A DNA stretch of 63,725 bases, counting the filler, from Octopus bimaculoides (taxonomy: Eukaryota): assembly GCF_001194135.2 (NCBI RefSeq). It is 8 parts of 7 records of this genome, joined end to end, with 100 filler letters (N's around TTAATTAATTAA, not from the genome) between each part and the next. Parts side by side here need not be neighbours in the genome. Positions count along the whole stretch, not along the records: positions 1 to 12,529 come from NC_069002.1; 7 more parts are not named here. One strand, 5' to 3'. The notes beneath the pieces were generated by a model, which ran no database searches, had not been told where the DNA came from, and worked only from the letters and a program-made list of their open reading frames with translations. Shown here one piece after another: positions 1 through 27,400 of the stretch; the stretch's first letter is position 1, and every line of letters starts with the position of its first letter. Position numbers and translations under genes: made by a program.

Positions 1-126
1 ATATATATATATATATATAAATATAAAAATATATTAGAAATAACGAATTTCTAAATCTCTCTGAGAGACTTAAGCAGTAGTGATGCAATAAAGTAGTTGT
101 ATACTGCCAACTTAACGTGACAGTCC

Positions 127-354
127 CAATAGGGGAATATACTACTGCTATTTAGCCCTAGGAAGCTGGACCACTTCCTGTCGGCCTTGACACATTTCCT
201 GTCTCCTTATGTTTGCGAGGCGGAGACAAACTCCTCCACCCAGCCTAGCTTGCATTCAGGGACATGTTTCTGAGTCTTTGCTCGTCATCAGCCTGAAGTA
301 GCACGACCAGCTGGTTGAAATAGGGCTAAATAGCAGTAGTATATTCCCTTATTG
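127..354. mobile_element. Non-autonomous Penelope-like pLTR derivative bounded by 34-bp inverted repeats
   Basis: 127-160 and 321-354 are reverse complements with 1 mismatch and enclose the hammerhead motif. Confidence 0.6.
255..297 (-). ncRNA. Minimal type-I hammerhead ribozyme motif (Penelope-type)
   Basis: Minus strand reads TTCAGG-CTGATGA-CGAGCAAAGACTCA-GAAACATGTC-CCTGAA. This gives a 6-bp stem I, an intact CUGAUGA/GAAA core, GAG/CTC stem II, palindromic ACATGT stem III and a GUC cleavage triplet. Confidence 0.8.
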
Positions 355-1242
355 ATTCGTTTTTCGTTTTTCTTCTTTTTGTTTACATTGTTTTGGACTT
401 GACCTGATCAGAGAGATATCATAATGAAACGAGGGCTTAATGAGCAATGCCACTTTCTGTAACAATAAAACAGTCTGGAATAGTCCAAATTATAGTTCAT
501 TCAGTGGTTGAAGCATCATTGGATTTTTTCTTCTTGTTTGAAGATTTCTTTAACTAAAACCCTTCAACGTGATGTCCCAGCTTGAATGCAGTTTAAGGAT
601 TGAAATGAGTAAAAGATAAAAGATAGAAGCTGAGATATTGTATCAATGGTTAAACAATAGCTGTGGACTGATTGATTGATTGATTGATTGATACTCGCGA
701 CAAGAGTAACTTGGAGTACTCCACATCTACAACAAATAACACAAGAGTATCAGCATTATGTTGATAATATTCCTTTCATTTTGTGCTTTCCCTCTCTCTT
801 ACTCTCCTTACCTCTCTTGCTCCGTCCATCACTTCTCTTCCTCCTCCCTCTCTCCTACTTTCTCTTTCTCTTTCTATTCTGCACTTCTTTTTCTCTCTCT
901 CTCCCCCTCTCTTTATCAGCCTTCTCTATCCCTTTCCCTTTCCACAGTCTACCTCTCACCACCACCCCTCAGCTAACAACTCTCTCTCCCTCTCCCCTGC
1001 TTTCTCTCTCTCTCTCTCTCCCTCTTTCTCTTTCCACAGTCTACCTCTCACCACCCCTCAGCTCAGCCTCAGCTAACAACTCTCTCTCTTTCTCCCCTGA
1101 TTTCTCTCTCTCTCTCTCCATTCCTCACTTATTTCTCTCTCTCTCCCTCTTTATCAGCCTTCTCTATCCCTTTCCCTTTCCACAGTCTACCTCTCAGCTC
1201 AGCCTCAGCTAACAACTCTCTCTCTCTCTCTCTCTTCTCCAG

Positions 1243-1410
1243 CTAACAGTAAATGTAATACAGGCTGCCGACCTACCTGGGATGGATATGTCTGGGACGT
1301 CTGACCCATACGTCAAAGTCTATCTAATGCCCGACAAAAAGAAGAAATTTGAAACAAAAGTCCATCGGAAAACACTGAATCCAGTATTTAATGAATCCTT
1401 CACATTTAAG
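1243..1410 (+). CDS. Syt1: Synaptotagmin-1 internal exon, first half of C2A ([56 protein letters not shown])
   Basis: Polypyrimidine tract plus AG at 1241-1242 and GTAAGT at 1411. 168 nt, phase 0-0. Contains the C2A loop-1 aspartates ([11 protein letters not shown]). Too short for the ORF track; translated by hand. Confidence 0.97.
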
Positions 1411-2105
1411 GTAAGTCACATCCACTGACCAATTTCAGTAACTGGTAACCATAGCAACTGCAGTAACAACACTAACCATAGCAGTCATAGTAGCCATAGT
1501 AACAGCAGTTAGTATAGTAACCACTGTAACCATGGTAACTGCAGTAACCACAGTAACTACTGTAGCCATAGTAACCACAGCCTGTAACATCCTCATCATG
1601 GTCATCATTATCATCATCATTAATTTCATCATCATCATCCTTCGACATGGTTGAACAACCAATCGCAACCAGTCAGGATTCACAGCATGATCGACTTCTC
1701 CACCTTTCGATCATTCATTGCCACCACTTTGATGGCAATTCCTGAGTTGCACGCAGTCACATCTAGAAAGGTGTGTTTCCTTGAGAATGCTCTTCCTGTC
1801 AGCCTCTGCAAGAGGAGAGATGAAATGATCTCTCCCTCTCTCTGCTCGATAACAGTGACCATCCAATTCTAGATGTTTCTGGCCTAGACACAAAGATACT
1901 AGCTTCAACTTCCCATGTATTTGTTATAGGGTAACATGCTCTTTTCAGTAAATGTCTTGTGCTTTGTGACGGAGGTTGGTAACCTCATGCAACAACGGCA
2001 GGATGTTACATCAGAGTGTAACATTAGAATGTAACATCGGTAGGTAACATCAGTGTGTAACAACAGTAACAATATATAACATCAGTAAGTAACAATATTC
2101 AACAT

Positions 2106-2140
<35 letters not shown>

Positions 2141-2739
2141 NNNNNNNNNNNNNNNNNNNNNNNNNNNNNNNNNNNNNNNNNNNNNNNNNNNNNNNNNNNN
2201 NNNNNNNNNNNNNNNNNNNNNNNNNNNNNNNNNNNNNNNNNNNNNNNNNNNNNNNNNNNNNNNNNNNNNNNNNNNNNNNNNNNNNNNNNNNNNNNNNNNN
2301 NNNNNNNNNNNNNNNNNNNNNNNNNNNNNNNNNNNNNNNNNNNNNNNNNNNNNNNNNNNNNNNNNNNNNNNNNNNNNNNNNNNNNNNNNNNNNNNNNNNN
2401 NNNNNNNNNNNNNNNNNNNNNNNNNNNNNNNNNNNNNNNNNNNNNNNNNNNNNNNNNNNNNNNNNNNNNNNNNNNNNNNNNNNNNNNNNNNNNNNNNNNN
2501 NNNNNNNNNNNNNNNNNNNNNNNNNNNNNNNNNNNGGTACACGTGTCTGTGGAGTGCTCAGCCACTTGCACATTAATTTCACGAGCAGGCTGTTCCGTTG
2601 ATCGGACCAACTGGAACCCTCGACGTCGTAAGCGACGGAGTGCCAACAACCACCACAACCACCAAAACAACCACCACCACTCTTCTGTAAATAAATAATT
2701 ACAGCTTCTAATTACCGTTTTTCTATGCTTCTCTTGCAG

Positions 2740-2916
2740 AACGTACCTTATGCTGACATTACGGGTAAGACGCTAATATTTGCGATCTATGATTTTGATC
2801 GCTTTTCAAAGCATGACCAAATTGGTCAAGTCCAAGTTCCAATGAATTCTATAGATCTTGGATCAGTAATTGAAGAATGGAGGGATCTCACCAGTCCTGA
2901 TAATGATGCTGAGAAA
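2740..2916 (+). CDS. Syt1: Synaptotagmin-1 exon, second half of C2A (NVPYADITGKTLIFAIYDFDRFSKHDQIGQVQVPMNSIDLGSVIEEWRDLTSPDNDAEK)
   Basis: TTGCAG acceptor and GTAAGT donor at 2917. 177 nt, phase 0-0. Carries the YDFDRFSKHD calcium-binding loop 3. Confidence 0.97.
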
Positions 2917-3496
2917 GTAAGTTTTGGTTTTTCTTTTACCGCCACACATTATATTTTTATTTATCATTTGTATATTTAATTAGTGAATTAACAAATTATC
3001 TGTATTAATAAGTCGTGTTAATAAAGTAAGTTCATTGTGTGTGTTTGAGGAAGTGTGTGTGTATATTTGTGAGTGTACATGTTTATATGTAAAGGTGTGT
3101 GTGTTTATGAGTGTGTGCATGTGTGTATGCAATGTTCATATATTCAGTGTATGTGTGTAGTAAGTGTATATGTTCATGAGCATAGTGTATGTGTGTGTGT
3201 GTTGGTGGGTGAGTGTGTATGTGTGTGTGTTTGTGTGTGTGTTTGTATGTGTGTGCGTTTGTGTATGTGTGTGCTCAATTGTGTTTTATCCTTTAGTCAT
3301 GAGGGAAAGCTGTGCCCAAGACTCTTCACTTGCTCTCCCTTCTTTGCGGCATTTGACAGACGTTTGGCCAAACAGTGAGTATAAAGTAAAAAAAAAATAT
3401 AACCAAAAACAAAAACAAAAAAAAAATGACCAAATTTATTTTAAGCTTTCAGTTGTGTTCAATGGTTGACCTGTGGTCAAACTTTGTATTTTATAG

Positions 3497-3649
<153 letters not shown>

Positions 3650-3788
3650 ATNNNNNNNNNNNNNNNNNNNNNNNNNNNNNNNNNNNNNNNNNNNNNNNNN
3701 NNNNNNNNNNNNNNNNNNNNNNNNNNNNNNNNNNNNNNNNNNNNNNNNNNNNNNNNNNNNNNAGCTTTACAGATTAAAATATATATAA

Positions 3789-3988
3789 AATATATAGTTT
3801 TAGGGAAAAGAACCAAGTTTCATGAACTCATCGATGAAAATCCACTGTCACATATAGAAAAATTGATAATTAAAAGCACAATAAATGAGTATAATATAAT
3901 ACAAAGTAAATATCATAAGATAAAGAGAATAATATTATTATTCATCGATGAGTTCATGAAACTTGGTTCTTTTCCCTAAAACTATATA

Positions 3989-3990
<2 letters not shown>
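3789..3990. repeat. Perfect 50-bp inverted repeat (3789-3838 / 3941-3990) in a dispersed element
   Basis: The arms are exact reverse complements. A one-armed copy of the same element lies in the opposite orientation at about 49662-49836. Confidence 0.85.
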
Positions 3991-4065
<75 letters not shown>

Positions 4066-4467
4066 TGAATGCAGTGTTCATTGACATAGATCCAGTGACA
4101 ATTATATTGTAATCATGGATGACATTAGGTAGCCTAAACAGTGAAAGACATTTACCCAAGGTCCAAATAACTACTTACATATATCGTTTAAAATAATATT
4201 ACATGAGAATGGAGGATATGAGGCTTTGATAGTAGTTCACCACATTCGTTTCTGCACCATACACCAGCTGAGTTTATATTCTATTGCCATTATACAAGAT
4301 CATTCTTTATAATTATTATATAATTAAATATTTTTCAGCACCAGCAGCTGTGTATGGGTGCTTCACTGGGTAAAATATACCCTATTGTAGGATAACATGT
4401 GATAACCAAATAACAATTATAAGAACTTTTAAATGCATGTTATAAGGTTTTTACCCAAATTATACTA

Positions 4468-4549
<82 letters not shown>

Positions 4550-5566
4550 TATAAATTGAATATTAATTTGATTAAATATATATATAAATATATATATACA
4601 NNNNNNNNNNNNNNNNNNNNNNNNNNNNNNNNNNNNNNNNNNNNNNNNNNNNNNNNNNNNNNNNNNNNNNNNNNNNNNNNNNNNNNNNNNNNNNNNNNNN
4701 NNNNNNNNNNNNNNNNNNNNNNNNNNNNNNNNNNNNNNNNNNNNNNNNNNNNNNNNNNNNNNNNNNNNNNNNNNNNNNNNNNNNNNNNNNNNNNNNNNNN
4801 NNNNNNNNNNNNNNNNNNNNNNNNNNNNNNNNNNNNNNNNNNNNNNNNNNNNNNNNNNNNNNNNNNNNNNNNNNNNNNNNNNNNNNNNNNNNNNNNNNNN
4901 NNNNNNNNNNNNNNNNNNNNNNNNNNNNNNNNNNNNNNNNNNNNNNNNNNNNNNNNNNNNNNNNNNNNNNNNNNNNNNNNNNNNNNNNNNNNNNNNNNNN
5001 NNNNNNNNNNNNNNNNNNNNNNNNNNNNNNNNNNNNNNNNNNNNNNNNNNNNNNNNNNNNNNNNNNNNNNNNNNNNNNNNNNNNNNNNNNNNNNNNNNNN
5101 NNNNNNNNNNNNNNNNNNNNNNNNNNNNNNNNNNNNNNNNNNNNNNNNNNNNNNNNNNNNNNNNNNNNNNNNNNNNNNNNNNNNNNNNNNNNNNNNNNNN
5201 NNNNNNNNNNNNNNNNNNNNNNNNNNNNNNNNNNNNNNNNNNNNNNNNNNNNNNNNNNNNNNNNNNNNNNNNNNNNNNNNNNNNNNNNNNNNNNNNNNNN
5301 NNNNNNNNNNNNNNNNNNNNNTTCACCACATTCGTTTCTGCACCATACACCAGCTGAGTTTATATTCTATTGCCATTATACAAGATCATTCTTTATAATT
5401 ATTATATAATTAAATATTTTTCAGCACCAGCAGCTGTGTATGGGTGCTTCACTGGGTAAAATATACCCTATTGTAGGATAACATGTGATAACCAAATAAC
5501 AATTATAAGAACTTTTAAATGCATGTTATAAGGTTTTTACCCAAATTATACTATATATATACATAT

Positions 5567-5733
5567 ATACGACAGGCTTCTTTCAGTTTCCGTCTACCAA
5601 ATCCACTCACAAGGCTTTGGTCGGCCCGAGGCTATAGTAGAAGACACTTGCCCAAGATGCCACGCAGTGGGACTGAACCTGGGACCATGTGGTTGGTAAG
5701 CAAGCTACTTACCACACAGCCACTCCTACGCCT
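5567..5733 (-). mobile_element. SINE family A, 5' part (GGAGTGGCTGTGTGGTAAG head)
   Basis: Reverse complement of the head seen at 6218, 7152, 17231 and 23023. Confidence 0.85.
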
Positions 5734-6217
5734 ATATATATATATGATAAAAAAATATATAATATATATATAATAAAAAAGGAGAAAAGTCCATTATACT
5801 GCAATATTTCCCAGAAGAAACTTTTAATTGTCTTGGAGAAGAGAAGTGAACATCATTGAATTTCATCGATCTTGCCTCATAATTATGAAATGGACCAATG
5901 TGTAAGGAATCAATACGATGCAGCACATGCTGTACAAATGGTAAAGCGCCACACATAGTTTTATGATGACTAGTTTGATTGTCTTTTATTGCAGTGTTCA
6001 AATCTTGCCTGTCACCCACCCCATCACTTGGTTAATAAATTATGTTAAAATATCTACCAATATGACGCTGGAATTTATTCAAATCTGCTAGAAGAATACT
6101 GTTGTTTAACCCTAGGTAAGGTTTGAATAAGTAGAAATATAATCAAAAGCATTCCAGCCTTGACTCTCTCAGCTTTTTCCAGCATGTAAGGGAGCATAGG
6201 ACCACATTATCTTACAT

Positions 6218-6626
6218 AGGCACAGGAGTGGCTGTGTGGTAAGAAGCTTGCTTCCCAACCACATGGTTCTGAGTTCAGTCCACTGCATGGCACCTTGGGT
6301 AAGTGTCTTCTTTTAGAGTCCCAAGCCAACCAAAGCCTTGTTAGTGAATTTGGTAGACGGAAACTGAAAGGAGCCTGTCATACGTATACATGTATATCTA
6401 TGTGTGTGTGTCATTGTGTTTGTCTCTCACCAGTACTTGACAACCAGTGCTGATGTGTTTACATCCCCGTAACTTAGCAGCTCAGCAAAAGAGCCCGATA
6501 CAATAAGTACCAGGTTTAAAAAAGAAAAAAAGTACTGGGATCAATACATTCAACTTGAAAATTCTTCAAGGTGGTGCCCCAGCATGGCTGCAGTCCAATG
6601 ACTGAAACAAGTAAAAGATAAAAGAT
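6218..6626 (+). mobile_element. SINE family A, full-length-like copy
   Basis: A-box/B-box-like head, internal (TA/TG)n and a GACTGAAACAAGTAAAAGA tail. Similar copies at 7152-7553, 17231-17640, 23023-23412, 25988-26280, 26517-26883 and 29805-30015 (minus). Confidence 0.85.
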
Positions 6627-8568
6627 AATATTTTTTAAAAGTGGCGGAGTGTAATCTGAGTGAAGTTTGGCTTTTATTTCTTGCAAGGCACAGAACCACA
6701 TTGAAACTTTCTCACTGGTTTCAAAAGAATGTTGCATTGTGCCAAAGTAATAAGGAATCAATAGCCAGTTGCACAATAACCATTTTCTCTGATTCTGTTC
6801 GGTTGGACCAACAGAACAATGTTATTTGACAACAGTTCCTGTCTTTTATTGATTACAGTTCTAATTTTAGAAGCTCTGTCTGTAACCATATTCTTGCAAA
6901 TATAGATTTAACATATTTTTCGTTTATTTTTATTTTCCTTGTTTCAATCATTGGCCTGTGACCATTCTGGGGCCCCCACCTTGAAGGGTTTAGTCGAAAA
7001 AATTGACCTCGGTATTTCTTTCTTTCTTCTAAGTCTATCAATCTCTTTTGGTGAACTGTTAAGTTACTTGGATGTAAACAAACCAAAACCAGTTGTCTAT
7101 TCATGGTGGTGGACAAACAATAGCACAAAGACACATGCACACATACACATATAGGTGCAGGCATGGCTGTAGGTAAGGAGCTTGCTTCCCAACCATATGG
7201 TTCCAGGTTCAGTCTTACTGCGTGGTACCTTGGGCAAGTGTCTTCTCTATAGCCTCGAAGTGATCAAAGCCTTATGAGTGGATTTGATAGACGTTGAGTG
7301 TGTGTATATATATGTGTGTGTGTGTATGTATATATTTATGTAGGTGTGTCTTTGTGTTTGTCCCCATCACCACTTGATAATTGGTGTTGGTTTGTTTATG
7401 CCCTCTGCAACATAGCGGTTCAGCAAAAGAAATCAATAGAATAAATACAAGACTTGAAAATAAGTTCTGGGGTCAATATGTTTCACCAGAACCCTTCAAG
7501 GGAGTTCTCCCTGATATGGCTGCAGTCCAGTGAGTGAAACAAGTAAAAGATAAGTCATTTTTTTTATATAAGACATTATTGTATCATTTATGGGAGATTT
7601 AGCTGCTGTTTCTATGAAAGCACATGGCTTAGTGGTTAGAATATTTGGCTCACAATCATTAGGTCATGAGTTCAATTCCAGGTGTCACATTGCGTGCTTA
7701 AGCAAGACTTTATTTTACATTGCTTCAGTTCACTCAGCTGGCAAAAATGAGTGGTACCTGTAATTCAAAAGGCCCGTCCTGTCGCATTCTGTGTCATGCT
7801 GAATCTCCTTGGGAACTACATTAAAGGTATATGTATCTGTGGAGCGCTCAGCCACTGGGACGTAAATCTCATGAGCAGGCTGTTCTGTTGATCAGATCAA
7901 CTGAAACACTTATCGTTACAACCAACGAAGTGCCAGTTAAGTTAACACATAAAGCACAACGGGCCCCGATCGTGGCCGTCAGGCACAGGTCGACAGGCCA
8001 CGATCATGGCCCAGATAGATGCATTTAATTTATGGATGTTTGTTGGGGTCTAATGTCACTCAAACGCTCTGATACCCCACAGAATGCAAGAGGACTAATA
8101 GCTCAACTAATGAGTTTTCAGATGATGTAAAACTTGCCACTATTATATACTAAGAAGATATTTTAACTATTTTTTGTTTTTTGTGTGCATGGTAGTTTCA
8201 TCTTCATAAAATGTGCTCAGCAGTCCATGCTATGTAAATGCAAGTCCCAGCGCTTCATGGGTTAAGTTAAGCTGTTATTTCTATCAAGTTGAGCAACCAT
8301 ATAAACACTCCCTCAATTCAGAATCTAATTAGACTTCCCTGTTTAATTTACTCTCCTTGTTTCTGGAAATTTCTCAAAACAACCAGAAGTACGTACTTGA
8401 CATGTCTATTTTACTTCATCTCATACAACTGATGGGGTTTTTTTTACCTTAAAAAAAAAAATGGATGAAAGATAATCCATTGGTGCCACTCACTCTTTGT
8501 ATTGACACAGAGTCAGTGACTGATCCCCTAATTTGCATTTTTCACCTGAGTATCTTTTCCTTTACCAG

Positions 8569-8702
8569 ATCCCTACGTCAAAATAACTTTATATCAGGGA
8601 AATAAACGACTGAAAAAGAAGAAGACAACCATTAAGAAACATACTTTGAATCCTTACTTCAATGAATCTTTCACATTTGAAGTTTCTTTTGAACAAATCC
8701 AG
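8569..8702 (+). CDS. Syt1: Synaptotagmin-1 C2B alternative exon 1 ((D)[44 protein letters not shown])
   Basis: TTTACCAG acceptor and CAG|GTATTT donor. 134 nt, phase 1-0, joins the 3614 exon in frame. Polybasic KKKK strand present. Confidence 0.93.
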
Positions 8703-9871
8703 GTATTTTTGTTGGGAGATTCTTCAGCTGCATCTTTTCAAGATGTCTCGCTGATTTTGGTGCTCTTACCTTGTTTCCAACGGCTTGCCATATTTGCTAC
8801 GTCCTTCAGCTACAAGCTCAGACCACATTCACGTTCTTCACGATTATTCTAATCCATTTTCTTCAGCATTATTTCTTCATCGACAAATGTAGAAATCTGA
8901 ACATGAAGAATTTCCTTTTTTTGAAACAGACTCATTAACGTGTCAAGTGATGACAAATGTTACAATGACGATGATAAAAATGATGATGGTATGGCAACGA
9001 TGACAGTGACAGCAATAACAAGAACATTCATTTTGTAAACGCTCCAAATAATGGTAATGGACAGAGAGGAATTTTGTGTTCAGATTTCTGTGTTTATATG
9101 ATATACATACATACATATATATATATACATATATATATGTGTGTGTTTGGGCTAATATTAATACAAGTATGGACTTAACGGAGGTGGCTATGGAAAGGTG
9201 AAAACGTAAGTGGTTAAAATGTATAAAAAAAACAAAATAACATCCACAAAAGCTAATACCTCCCCACCGCCCAACATACACACACATGGATGTTTCTCAA
9301 GCATTAATCCTTTAGCATTTGAACCAGCCATATCCTGCCTAAATATTCTACCTGTTTTATGTTCAAACTGGCCAGATCCAGATTCTCACACCTACCTTAC
9401 AATATTATTCTAAAAATAAACAACCATGTCAATGAAATCTCAAATCTACAAGAAAGGGCATGACTAATTCAAAAGAATATGAATAAAAGAACATTACATT
9501 TGACAAAGAAATCTGAATACTAAAGGGTTAAACATTAATTCGAAGTTATTTCTTCAAATATAACCAAATTGAAAAGAACCAAGCCACCTCTGATCTCTGT
9601 TGACATATTTGTATTAGTATAAAATTTTCTTCCAGGTTTTGGGAATTCTTCAACTAATGGCTTTTTGTTTATCTTAAACTGCTCTTTTTATTTTTCATTC
9701 CTACCAAACTTCCTCCTAAGCTGATCTTACGACCCAGCAACAAGGCCACCACTTCACGCATGCGGTGTCTTTGTTTTGTTTTTTTTTGTTTTTTTTAATC
9801 TCCGTTTTTCACCTTCTGTCTTCATGTTTCCTTCAAGCCGCTCTTCTTTGTGCTTCTCTTTTTCAATCCAG

Positions 9872-10005
9872 ATCCTTATGTTAAGATATCTCTGATGCTA
9901 AACGGTAAAAGAATTAAGAAGAAGAAAACCACTATCAAGAAATGTACACTGAATCCATACTACAATGAATCATTTGCGTTCGAAGTCCCCTTTGAACAAA
10001 TACAG
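9872..10005 (+). CDS. Syt1: Synaptotagmin-1 C2B alternative exon 2 ((D)[44 protein letters not shown])
   Basis: Long pyrimidine tract plus CCAG acceptor and CAG|GTATAA donor. 134 nt, phase 1-0, same length and phase as 8569-8702; 34/44 residues identical. Confidence 0.95.
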
Positions 10006-11284
10006 GTATAAACCCTTGTTCCCCCACCCCTCCCAATCACCACCAATGTCTACATTACGTCTCCTTCCTCCCTTCCCTCCAACTGTTTACCTTGATTATC
10101 ATGTGATTGTAGTAGTAGTAGTAGTAGTAGCAGCAGCAGTGCCACATCTGAAAATGTTGCATAACTCTTGGAATGTTGATGTGTTCTTTGATTATTTTTT
10201 TGTGTTACTTTTCTGCCTTCATAGAATTTCTTAGATGCATTCCACACCATCAATATGGAAATGGTGCACACTTCAAGATGCATGGAAAAACATTATACGT
10301 AGTAGATTTCTTTCTTTTTTGTTTGTTTTGTTTTGTACCATTCTGTTTTTATAGTTTACAGTCTCAAAGACAAATTTAGAGTATTGAAACATTTCTGAAA
10401 ATTCTTTCAGGAATTAATATATTCTAAATTTATAAGTTTGTTTTAAAAGTCCATTCTACATTTTTTTAATCGTGTTTTTGTAGTGTTGTCTGCTTAAAAT
10501 GTTGTCCTAATATTTCTGTCCCCATGTGTATAACTTAGTTCTAACAATTCTGTTCACTCTGTGTGGAGTATCCCAAACTGTCCTGTGTGTTTCACCCAAA
10601 CCTTTCCCACTGTCTTACCTTTTTATCTTTTTTTGATATGCCTTACCTGTCCTTTTTAGAGTTCATATATGGTTCTATACAGCTCATATATATTAGGGGT
10701 TTACCTCACGATCATATGGTCATGGGTTTTTATTCCAGGTCTAGGCAGAGCATAGTGTTCTTGAGCAAGGCACTTCTTTCCATGCTGAAATTGAGTACCA
10801 CCGGAGTACTCATACAGCTCTGTCTCTCTCTTTCTTCCTCCCTGTAGCTGTCATATCTTTTATATTCCACTGGTTCAATGGTGAATGGGCCAAGGAGGTA
10901 CCCATATCTACACACAACTACACAGGCACCTAAAACAATTAGTGAAAGCATGGTACACGCTACCAATATATATTTGCTTTCCAAGTGTCAGCTACACACA
11001 TATTTTTATACTGTCCTATAACTAAACTCATATATCATTCCATACATTTGGATCCCTATATTGTCTTAGGTTTAGAACCATGTATAGTTCTGTGTTTGTT
11101 TCTGTAAATTTTCCTATGTCTAAGTCCATGTTGCAGTAATACATCACTTTACAAGGACCCGTTTTATGAGACCCTGGGTTTATGAGCTTTTACATGTCTT
11201 ATTTTCTGTTAATGAGCTTTTGCTTTACGAGCGTTCTCCAAGAAAAAATTAACTTGAATATCGAAGCATCACTCTGTGTGTGTG

Positions 11285-11355
<71 letters not shown>

Positions 11356-11381
11356 GTGTGTGTGTTTGTATACACACACAC

Positions 11382-11419
<38 letters not shown>

Positions 11420-11845
11420 CCTGTACTCAGTCTGACATGCTGTTCTGTCTTTAACCCCTTCTATTGTCCTCTATTTGACTAAATATGTTGTCCTATGTCT
11501 GAGTCCACATATTGTCCTATTTCTTCATCCCTATATTTATTGCCCTGTGTTTGGCTGAATATATTATCCTATTTTTGACTTCACATATTATCCTATCTCT
11601 GAGTCCATATATACATACAACTTACTCCACAAGATTTTACTTCTGATGGTATCTGCATGCATATATATATAAAGTATCATATCAAGAAAATGGAGAGTGT
11701 GACATAGAAAATCAATTTATCTTCATAATAGTAGTCAATCTCATGTCACCTATGCATGTTTCCATTGCTATAACAACAACTGGAACTTCATAAGTGTTAA
11801 GCACCGATGTCAAAGAAGAACCACCAATAAACACCAATTAACAAA

Positions 11846-24428: not shown

Positions 24429-26983
24429 TGTGTGTGTTTGTGTGTGTGTTGTTGGAGAGGGGGATAGAGAGAGAGTGCTACGAAGAGGGAGGCAGGGAGG
24501 GTGAGAAAGAGAGAGAGAGAGGAAGAAGGGAGAGAAAGTAAATATGAGGCTGAGACAAAGTGAGAAAAAAGAGGGAGAGAGAATTATAAAATGTGAAAGA
24601 GATAGAGAAGGTGAGAGAGCGGGATAGATAGATAGATAGATAGAGAGGGGCAAGAGAGAGAGGAAAAAAAGAGAGAAAGTCTGGTGTTAGTGTGGTTGAG
24701 ATATGATAAGATTTAGTTTCCGTGTTGTATGAAGAAGGTAAAAATATAAAATAAAATAAAGAAAAAGAAAAATCGGAACGAAACGAAAATAGAGAAATAA
24801 GCAACGAAATACAAAAAAAAACTAGAGACAGGAAAATAGTTCTGATCGGAAAAAGGAATTAAAAAGAAAAGACAAAAAAAAAAAGAAAGAAAAAGAAGCT
24901 GGTGATGATATGCTTGTTGGTGTTGCTTTGTGTATGTTTTTGGTAGGTTTTCTTTTCTCTCTAGCTTTTTCTTGCTTCTTTCAACATAATATCCTTTAGT
25001 CTCCTTCACTAATTTATACACATATATCTGCACGAATGTACGTATGTACTACTACTACTACTACTACTACTACTAATAATAATGATAATAATAATGATAA
25101 GGATTATTACGAAGTGGCATTAGCATTATCTTCAATTCATTTTTATATATTATACAGCTTCAAATAGACCTACACATGTTTCTGCTGCATCGATTAGTAA
25201 CCGGCAAACGTTTGGAGAAGTCCTTTACTAATTACCTATATATAGCTCGAAACGTCAAAGACTTTCCGTATTCCCGAGCGTCATACTAATACATCCTTTT
25301 GTTATTTACACCACCTGTCCTCGTCTGTTGTTTTTTCGTATATTCTCCCATATATATATATATATATATATATACTGTTGTGTCTGGGGAGGGTCATTTT
25401 CTTTTNNNNNNNNNNNNNNNNNNNNNNNNNNNNNNNNNNNNNNNNNNNNNNNNNNNNNNNNNNNNNNNNNNNNNNNNNNNNNNNNNNNNNNNNNNNNNNN
25501 NNNNNNNNNNNNNNNNNNNNNNNNNNNNNNNNNNNNNNNNNNNNNNNNNNNNNNNNNNNNNNNNNNNNNNNNNNNNNNNNNNNNNNNNNNNNNNNNNNNN
25601 NNNNNNNNNNNNNNNNNNNNNNNNNNNNNNNNNNNNNNNNNNNNNNNNNNNNNNNNNNNNNNNNNNNNNNNNNNNNNNNNNNNNNNNNNNNNNNNNNNNN
25701 NNNNNNNNNNNNNNNNNNNNNNNNNNAATGCTTGATTTTATATTGTGTTATATATATAAAAACGATTCGACTTTAAGCTGAAATGTTTCAGTACGATATT
25801 TATTAAATTTTATAAGGAAAATATCAACATTAACTTCGATGCTTCGGCTTGCTTGCCTTCGAAGGAAGGAGGGTGGGGTGGGTGACGAGCCGAAAGATTA
25901 GGGAACAGAAATAATTGAGAATGACAAGTAAGCATGTATTAGGATAACATCAACAGATACAGGTACATCGCACAGCACAAATTTTGGGCGTTGCTGTAGT
26001 AAGAAGCTTGCTTCTCAGCTGTGGAAACTGAAAGGATCCCGTCGTATCTATCTAAGTATATAAGTGTGTGTGTGTGTTTCTGTCTGTGTTTGTCTCCCAT
26101 CACCGCTTGACAACCAGTGTTGGTGTGTTTAAGTCTCCGTAACTTAGCGGTTCGGCAAAAGAGACCAATAGAACAAGCTTAAAATATCAGTAAGTACTGG
26201 GATCGATTCATTCGACTAAAAATTCTCAAGACGGTGTTCCAGCATGACTGCAGTCTAATGACTGAAACAAGTAGGCGACAAAGGATTTATGAAAATTATC
26301 TTCGCCACCAGAGGGGGTGTTGCAATTATCAAATGGCAACTGATGACAGCTTAGTATGAGAAGGGGAGATAACTTCAAGAATATTGAATTCTCGATAACT
26401 TTGGAGAATTCTTGAAGTTTTGGAGATTTTCTCCTCTTTTCACGTGGAACTGACTTTATTGTCATTTGGTAATTATGATGTATCCTTGAGAGCGGAGATA
26501 AACGTAATAAATCAAGGAATAGCTGCGTGGCAGCTTTACCCGGGTTCGATCCTACTGCATGGTAACTTTGCCAGGCCCCTGGGCGATCAATACTTTGTGG
26601 GGATTTGGTAGACGAAAACTGAAAGAAGCCCATCGTGTGTCTGTGCATATCTATGTGTGTATGTGCAGATATATGTGTGTATGTGTGTTTGTCCCACACC
26701 ATCACTTATCAGTCAGTGCTGGTTTGTTTACGTCTCCATAACGTAGCAGTTTAGCATAAAACACCGATAGAATAAGTACCAGGATTAGAAAAATAAGTAT
26801 TGAGGCCGATCCATTCGACTAAAACTCTTCAAAGCAGTGTCCCAGTATGGCCGCAGTCCAATGACAGAAGCAAGTAAAGGATAATCTATGCTGCATGATA
26901 TTCGATATGCCTATATTTGTCAATCCTCTAAACCCAATTTTTCGCGAAAAAAGCACTGCCATTCCATTATACTTCACCACTCT

Positions 26984-27400
26984 ATCCCGACAGAAAAGAA
27001 GAGGAGTACACTTTAGAGTCATCAAAAATGGGGCTGTGTGCCTTCGTTCTAGAAATTCTTGTTTCGCTAATGGCTACCACATACATGTCAAGTGATTTGA
27101 AATCATTGAGCGAGTGACCTTGCTTCCAAGCTGATCCCAAGCCACGTACATTTACACATCCTACTCCGAATGAAACCATGTGCAACGAAGAAAATAGAGG
27201 GAAGCGTTACTCACCTTGGTCTTCGAGGAGGACAGGTAGTTTGGATTCTTTTACTAGAGAATGTCCCTTAAAATGCCTTTCTAATAAAGCTTTGTCCGTT
27301 AGTTTTCTGAAAATCCCAATACTTCGCAAGAAGTTGTCAAAGAGTGTTTGATAATTACGTCTCCTGATGTTTCTATTAATAATTTGTCTTCGACTGTTTT
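26984..27400 (-). mobile_element. Tx1/L1-like LINE fragment: end of ORF1 and start of the ORF2 APE endonuclease
   Basis: ...KLPVLLEDQGE* is followed by MVSFGVGCVNVRGL...VVAISETRI, the (N)VRGL and (Q/S)ET motifs of LINE APE domains. Confidence 0.7.

Follow-up and report, generated by a model that had tools for sequence, protein, structure and literature searches.

Tandem alternative C2B exons in the synaptotagmin-1 gene of Octopus bimaculoides: probable orthologs of an ancient lophotrochozoan exon pair

The synaptotagmin-1 locus of Octopus bimaculoides

A tblastn search with a synaptotagmin-1 (Syt1) probe and direct reading of the splice sites were performed on a genomic sequence of Octopus bimaculoides from NC_069002.1, which forms positions 1-12529 of the window (the whole stretch of DNA presented, 63,725 nucleotides, filler included) and in which the original prediction had placed a pair of duplicated, mutually exclusive exons of the C2B domain. 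Syt1 serves as the principal fast calcium sensor in transmitter release, and octopus Syt1 is a model for temperature-dependent RNA recoding. Five coding exons could be located, all on the + strand and all bounded by an AG acceptor and a GT donor. The first three are constitutive and the last two, here called exon A and exon B, are the alternative C2B exons (Table 1).

Judged by its translation, the gene is the Syt1 gene of Octopus, of which the sequence covers the C2A domain and the early portion of C2B. Octopus Syt1 proteins were retrieved with a composite query of 293 amino acids, and the translation of the C2A exons and exon B proved identical to O. bimaculoides A0A0L8IHK9, to the O. vulgaris protein and to isoform X1 of O. 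sinensis, in agreement with the gene assignment made earlier. The exon B protein is also identical in Argonauta hians, and at synonymous sites the locus diverges from that of O. vulgaris by ~0.04. The last coding exon, situated ~21 kb downstream of the pair in O. vulgaris, lies outside positions 1-12529. Intron lengths within this region are approximate, because runs of N occur inside the introns (2141-2535, 3652-3762 and 4601-5321); the intron from 3614 to exon A measures 4954 nt here versus 7124 nt in O. vulgaris. No third, degenerate copy of the alternative exon was found in 1-12529 by tblastn with the Syt1 probe, and an Rfam scan of the same region gave no match.

Table 1. Features of the Syt1 locus within positions 1-12529
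Feature	Position	Strand	Length, phase	Evidence and remarks
Syt1 C2A exon LTVNVIQ...FTFK	1243..1410	+	phase 0-0	tblastn, splice sites; identical protein in octopus Syt1 models
Syt1 C2A exon NVPYADI...DNDAEK	2740..2916	+	phase 0-0	tblastn, splice sites
Constitutive exon, C2A-C2B linker and C2B start, ENKLGDICF...GGLS	3497..3614	+	ends in phase 1	
Exon A, A-type alternative C2B exon	8569..8702	+	134 nt, phase 1-0	encodes (D)[44 protein letters not shown]
A-B intron	8703..9871	+	1169 nt	TA/ATAC microsatellite at ~9095-9138
GCATG of the original prediction	9758..9762	+		judged to be without significance; not conserved, frequent by chance
Pyrimidine tract and putative branch-point region 5' of exon B	9830..9871	+		TTCAAG at ~-38; blastn, alignment
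Exon B, canonical B-type C2B exon	9872..10005	+	134 nt, phase 1-0	encodes (D)[44 protein letters not shown]

Exons A and B as a mutually exclusive pair

Exons A and B share one upstream splice partner, the exon ending at 3614, which contributes the G of a split G/AT Asp codon; both alternatives begin with AT behind the same acceptor (ccag/AT) and end in phase 0, with the donors CAG/gtattt in A and CAG/gtataa in B. The two exons are identical at 94 of 134 nucleotides (70%) and differ at 10 of 44 residues, with the segment KKKKTTIKK common to both. With tblastn E values of 6e-11 for exon A and 5e-14 for exon B, their resemblance to Syt1 cannot be attributed to chance. Coordinates, donors, phases and spacing, as well as the individual residue differences listed in the original prediction, were reproduced exactly.

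When A is joined to B, the reading frame gives ILMLRYL and then a stop, i.e. after 7 codons. The own last exon being outside the region, the remaining combinations were read with the last exon of O. vulgaris: skipping of both exons causes a frameshift and a stop after 9 codons, and inclusion of either A or B alone remains open through to the natural stop. Both frame disruptions had been claimed beforehand and were found again. The results support A and B as a duplicated pair that is productive only if exactly one of the two is included.

In the proposed mechanism, the exon ending at 3614 would be spliced to either A or B, and the chosen exon would then be joined to the last coding exon. Since 134 nt cannot be divided into whole codons, transcripts that include both exons or none would meet a premature stop within 7-9 codons, and these are presumably cleared by nonsense-mediated decay or give a C2B-truncated protein.

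Ancient A-type and B-type exon classes

For the classification of the two exons, six diagnostic positions (317, 319, 320, 323, 333 and 339, rat numbering) were scored in ~55 named proteins of molluscs, annelids and a nemertean. The scores were bimodal; exon A scored +6/6 and is A-type, exon B scored -6/6 and is B-type. Isoform pairs consisting of one A-type and one B-type protein are present in Mytilus, Crassostrea, Haliotis, Pomacea, Ruditapes, Mercenaria, Gigantopelta and Lymnaea, with P0310 as the B-type and P0292 as the A-type protein of the latter. A-type exons were found further in the annelids Capitella, Lamellibrachia and Paralvinella and in the nemertean Tubulanus. The A-type follows a conserved pattern, DPYVKIALYQG[NT][12 protein letters not shown][RNC]TLNPY[FY][14 protein letters not shown], seen in unspliced genomic open reading frames and in spliced transcripts of other animals. 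Exon A of O. bimaculoides is identical to the bivalve/gastropod A-type consensus at 41 of 44 residues, compared with 34 of 44 to its neighbour exon B.

The genomic layout is shared as well. Here, the two exons are adjacent, homologous and of equal length and phase, and they lie between the same constitutive exons; the same layout was found in L009-L016, L019 and L020. Starting from the upstream exon, an A-type exon, a B-type exon and the last exon follow one another, with AG/GT bounds throughout, in the orthologous loci of O. vulgaris (L019) and Argonauta (L020) and in two further loci. The latter (L009/L010 and L011-L016), which are unrelated to each other and probably molluscan, have the upstream exon followed by an A-type exon, an intron of 0.8-1.05 kb and a B-type exon; L009/L010 include the last exon too. 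In all of these loci, L019 and L020 as well as L009-L016, the alternative exons are 134 nt long. Regarding usage, B-type junctions are present in RNA contigs of decapodiforms, and the A-type is carried by the O. sinensis X2 and X4 models and by full-length spliced transcripts of other species from Logan, ENA and JGI assemblies (e.g. P0257, P0260 and P0123).

It is therefore very probable that an ancient lophotrochozoan tandem pair of mutually exclusive exons has its octopus orthologs in exons A and B. By these comparisons, the pair is not specific to cephalopods and is an ortholog of the A/B pair widespread in molluscs, annelids and a nemertean. One further candidate for a cephalopod A-type exon (P0209/L021) has His333 as in octopus, but its nucleotides are closer to the A exons of the probably molluscan loci L009 and L011, and it was dropped.

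Duplicate alternative C2B exons are known from Syt1 of Aplysia and C. elegans, as the original prediction had stated and as two papers confirm (PMC1976326 and PMC2668829, both citing Nakhost 2004 and Mathews 2007). Among Lymnaea clones from the central nervous system, C2B-alpha and C2B-beta account for ~50% each (PMC7419297). The octopus pair resembles that of Aplysia and Lymnaea in belonging to the same gene, in its position within C2B and in consisting of tandem duplicated exons, which in octopus would be used alternatively too, and the Lymnaea proteins of both classes fall with exons B and A described here. All structural tests applied to the sequences place the pair with the alpha/beta exons of molluscan Syt1 C2B. 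The alpha and beta variants of Aplysia synaptotagmin I were reportedly described by Nakhost et al. in 2004 (J Neurochem 89:354). Exon A is probably of the C2B-beta type, based on Aplysia isoform 1 being B-type and on the naming reportedly used in that description. In the literature searched, no description of a cephalopod Syt1 C2B exon pair was found.

Selection on the two exons in octopods

The sequence of O. bimaculoides was compared with its orthologous counterparts in O. vulgaris (L019), Argonauta hians (L020) and Sepia pharaonis (L017). Against Argonauta, exon A showed 10.5 nonsynonymous and 17.5 synonymous differences (nonsynonymous divergence, dN, 0.107; synonymous divergence, dS, 1.63), exon B showed 0 and 10 (dN 0, dS 0.51), and the three upstream exons pooled showed 3 and 28 (dN 0.008, dS 0.34). 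The dN/dS ratio of exon A between Octopus and Argonauta is thus ~0.07-0.09, and a binomial comparison with the neutral expectation of ~80% nonsynonymous changes gave p = 4e-7. Neutral evolution, named in the original prediction as one of two marks of a pseudo-exon, does not apply to exon A. Exon A of Argonauta is intact, with 134 nt, the acceptor ccag/AT and the donor gtattt, amid introns that could not be aligned. Between Octopus and Argonauta, the substitution pattern indicates purifying selection on both exons.

The rates of the two exons differ strongly. In octopods, exon B is the slow canonical form, and exon A is retained by purifying selection, yet evolves much faster. Its protein change is also faster than that of the upstream exons (p = 4e-5), with a dN ~13 times that of the pooled constitutive exons, and one of its residues differs even between the sequence described here and O. 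vulgaris. Synonymous differences are raised too: the proportion of synonymous differences (pS) versus Argonauta is 0.67 in exon A, compared with 0.27-0.37 in exon B and the upstream exons (Fisher p = 0.0007). This suggests either that silent sites are more constrained in the exons in constant use or that exon A is used less.

Absence of exon A from Sepia pharaonis and the standing of the A/B pair in cephalopods

Several observations weigh against a pair maintained and used alternatively throughout the cephalopods. Between Octopus and Argonauta, 9 of 44 residues changed in exon A and none of 44 in exon B (Fisher p = 0.0016), and octopus exon A departs from the near-invariant molluscan A-type at three positions (T315, H333 and S348), in which, together with its fast change within octopods, it differs from Aplysia and Lymnaea. 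The Sepia pharaonis locus is without exon A: exon B is separated from the upstream exon by a gapless intron of 1431 nt (L017, 71456-72886), and no trace of exon A was detected in it by tblastn, by an nhmmer profile of five A exons or by a hidden Markov model of the A-type protein. All decapodiform proteins seen, i.e. translations of Doryteuthis pealeii complementary DNAs (cDNAs), Sepia models and at least 11 Logan transcript products, are B-type, and in the decapodiform transcripts L001-L008 the exon equivalent to 3497-3614 is joined directly to a B-type exon. The pair is consequently not general to cephalopods, and the importance of exon A in this group may be declining. In addition, the case for use of exon A in octopus is made by RefSeq models and evolutionary constraint, the decay of transcripts with both exons or none is presumed from their premature stops, and the naming of A and B as beta and alpha draws on the B-type Aplysia isoform 1 and on the reported Aplysia naming.

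A far-reaching reading of the lineage pattern would be that coleoids are abandoning the ancient A-type (beta) exon and are replacing exon choice by A-to-I editing of exon B. The reading arises from the deletion of the exon in a cuttlefish together with the all-B transcripts of decapodiforms, from an exon A that evolves more than 10 times faster than B in octopods, and from probable recoding of decapodiform exon B at I330V and T344A, of which residue 344 differs between octopus A and B. When seven Logan assemblies (L002-L008) were set against the Sepia genome (L017) and the unedited transcript L018, 4 of 882 nt differed. Three of the four are nonsynonymous A>G differences, two in exon B (I330V and T344A) and one in the last exon (E>G). 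From the base change, and provided that RNA and genome belong to one species, these are probably sites of A-to-I recoding. The D. pealeii cDNAs also have V330 and A344, and residue 344 is among the ten positions distinguishing A from B, with Thr in octopus exon A and Ala in exon B. If true, cephalopod Syt1 would offer a natural example of the role of a mutually exclusive exon pair passing to editing; for the present, such a replacement is regarded as doubtful.

It is unlikely, too, that exon A is simply decaying or nearly unused in cephalopods, i.e. a molluscan inheritance that was relaxed in octopods and deleted in decapodiforms, so that octopus Syt1 would functionally be B only. The high rate of exon A at nonsynonymous and synonymous sites, the residue that differs even from O. 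vulgaris and the missing exon in Sepia pharaonis are all in line with this reading, as is the finding that no cephalopod A-type transcript is present among the proteins derived from Logan, ENA or JGI. However, the low dN/dS of exon A rejects neutrality, Argonauta has retained its length, frame, acceptor and donor hexamer amid unalignable introns, and two RefSeq isoforms of O. sinensis were modelled with exon A. The lack of A-type transcripts is uninformative in this respect, because no octopod RNA assemblies were among the protein database matches.

With the ancient A/B pair as the preferred reading, the pair itself adds little that is new, since it is the ortholog of the gastropod alpha/beta exons and has already been modelled in RefSeq for O. 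sinensis. The remaining novelty is the pattern among lineages, with an exon A that is near-invariant in bivalves and gastropods, fast in octopods and missing in a cuttlefish.

Splice sites and the choice between exon A and exon B

Neither of the two donors has A at +4 or G at +5. Matches to the consensus are 7/9 for exon A and 6/9 for exon B, against 7-8/9 for the three upstream exons. The donor sequences GTATTT and GTATAA were correctly noted in the original prediction, but by this measure they are only moderately weak. Both hexamers are identical in the Octopus sequence described here, O. vulgaris and Argonauta, while the introns are otherwise unalignable. According to blastn, positions 9830-9871 are the only flanking intron stretch that can be aligned with Argonauta, and the match to Sepia is longer, starting from ~9767; the stretch contains a conserved pyrimidine tract and a probable branch site 5' of exon B.

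The choice of A versus B is likely a regulated competition of two suboptimal donors, with trans-acting factors in addition. The two exons would compete for the upstream donor and the downstream acceptor, and out-of-frame products would be discarded. Competition between splice sites combined with incompatibility of the reading frames is thus the likely mechanism of exclusivity.

A mechanism based mainly on competing RNA structures (docking/selector pairing, as in Dscam and 14-3-3zeta) or on an Rbfox switch at the GCATG, with frame and splice-site competition as secondary, appears very unlikely. The GCATG highlighted in the original prediction as an Rbfox-type motif does exist. It lies at -114 of exon B and is retained at -118 in the very close O. 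vulgaris, but it is absent there in Argonauta and Sepia, GCATG positions are not common to different genera, and the motif occurs once per ~706 nt in 1-12529, so that neither conservation nor frequency supports a role for it. The position-conserved (U)GCAUG within ~300 nt of the exon that is expected of an Rbfox-type element was not found across Octopus, Argonauta and Sepia. In Argonauta, exon A is flanked by (GA)n on its 5' side and (TC)n on its 3' side, whose pairing could exclude it in a loop, and the 181 nt past exon B contain five GCATG copies; however, the (TC)n arm is absent from the A-B intron of Octopus and the (GA)n arm from the upstream intron of O. vulgaris. Many inverted repeats are present within the 3615-8568 intron, although the inverted repeats of 1-12529 resemble interspersed or simple repeats.

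A check of the A-B intron for conserved docking/selector pairings had been proposed. The search for them comprised inverted-repeat scans of 1-12529 and of Argonauta and a cross-species blastn comparison of all introns, whose matches were only simple or interspersed repeats. Across Octopus, Argonauta and Sepia, no conserved intronic block or common inverted repeat was detected beyond the pyrimidine tract of exon B, i.e. no element conserved beyond ~40-100 nt 5' of that exon; the ~21-kb downstream intron, mostly outside 1-12529, was compared for O. vulgaris and Argonauta only, and a docking site could lie there. Competition of splice sites under the constraint of the reading frame is accordingly preferred as the likely explanation.

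Some repeats of these introns deserve mention in their own right. The complementary (GA)n/(TC)n tracts around exon A of Argonauta are located at 25643-25672, 26504-26528 and 26667-26700 of L020, and a 20-nt tandem repeat at ~26933-27100 of the same locus supplies the five GCATG copies after exon B. An (AG)28 tract at 4489-4545 of the O. bimaculoides sequence has no (TC)n partner, and O. vulgaris is without either tract. Several long inverted repeats occur at 5553-5738, 6213-6397 and 7172-7293 in the intron between 3614 and 8569; their arms measure 47-118 nt, with a complementarity of 83-89%. These repeats are probably inverted copies of an interspersed repeat, and they could form long double-stranded stretches in the pre-mRNA.

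Comparison with other diversified Syt1 C2B segments

Two further systems resemble the octopus pair. In C. elegans snt-1, the exon 6 isoforms are likewise mutually exclusive duplicated exons that alter C2B of Syt1 (Mathews et al. 2007, as cited in PMC2668829 and PMC2823689). A survey of 46 genomes concluded that mutually exclusive exons altering the C2 domains of invertebrate Syt1 arose repeatedly (PMC2823689, Craxton 2010), and following this conclusion the snt-1 pair is probably an independent duplication. In insects, the same C2B segment is diversified post-transcriptionally by A-to-I editing (Reenan 2005, as cited in PMC1976326), which differs from the octopus case in being base editing and not exon choice.

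A recent duplication specific to cephalopods, independent of the Aplysia and C. elegans cases, is extremely improbable: such repeated origins (Craxton 2010) and the 70% nucleotide identity of A and B would fit it, but exon A is nearer to the molluscan A-type consensus than to its own neighbour and has all six A-type diagnostic residues, the order A then B and the length of 134 nt recur in two other, probably molluscan genomes, and A-type exons are also known from annelids and a nemertean.

Predicted consequences for the C2B domain

Residues were mapped by alignment to solved human Syt1 structures (2R83 and others) and by the established rat numbering. Each of the two exons encodes approximately residues 309-353, including the split codon of Asp309, K324-K327 and Y338, and these residues are unchanged between A and B. 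Asp309 is a calcium ligand, K324-K327 the polybasic strand and Y338 a part of the primary SNARE interface. Substitutions between A and B fall in the hairpin 317-320, which adjoins the polybasic patch, and at residues 315, 323, 333, 339, 344 and 348. They may tune the interactions with calcium, lipids or partners, as reported for the alpha/beta isoforms of Aplysia and Lymnaea, and by this analogy a functional difference between A and B in calcium, lipid or partner binding is plausible.

Representation of exon A in public annotation

Exon A is already present in public annotation. Two RefSeq isoforms of O. sinensis, X2 (XP_036368181.1) and X4 (XP_036368182.1), carry exon A with a single change, Q318L, and in the isoforms X1, X3 and X5 its place is taken by an exon B that does not differ from the one described here. 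A sister species thus has this very exon pair, although its isoforms are computational gene models, from a species other than that of the sequence analysed. The O. bimaculoides entries retrieved (A0A0L8IHK9 and XP_014774810.1) contain exon B only. The expectation that annotation would miss one of the exons holds for these older O. bimaculoides models, but not for O. sinensis, whose models bring the octopus pair to the border of what is already known. Editing studies, proteomics and functional assays of octopus Syt1 need both versions of the strand bearing the polybasic patch, of which the older O. bimaculoides models hold only the one encoded by exon B.

Some of the gene models encountered were judged to be wrong. 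Both alternative exons are included in tandem in P0247 (Pinctada imbricata) and P0248 (Paralvinella palmiformis), and the O. bimaculoides model XP_014774810.1 (P0252) has an odd insert of ~70 residues resembling a retained intron.

The O. sinensis isoforms X4 (P0245) and X2 (P0246) differ also by a VQ dipeptide encoded upstream of 1-12529 (EKVQPDLEEL versus EKPDLEEL). This variant is the one described for Aplysia Syt I (PMC2668829), and a second splice choice of this gene is therefore also conserved in octopus.

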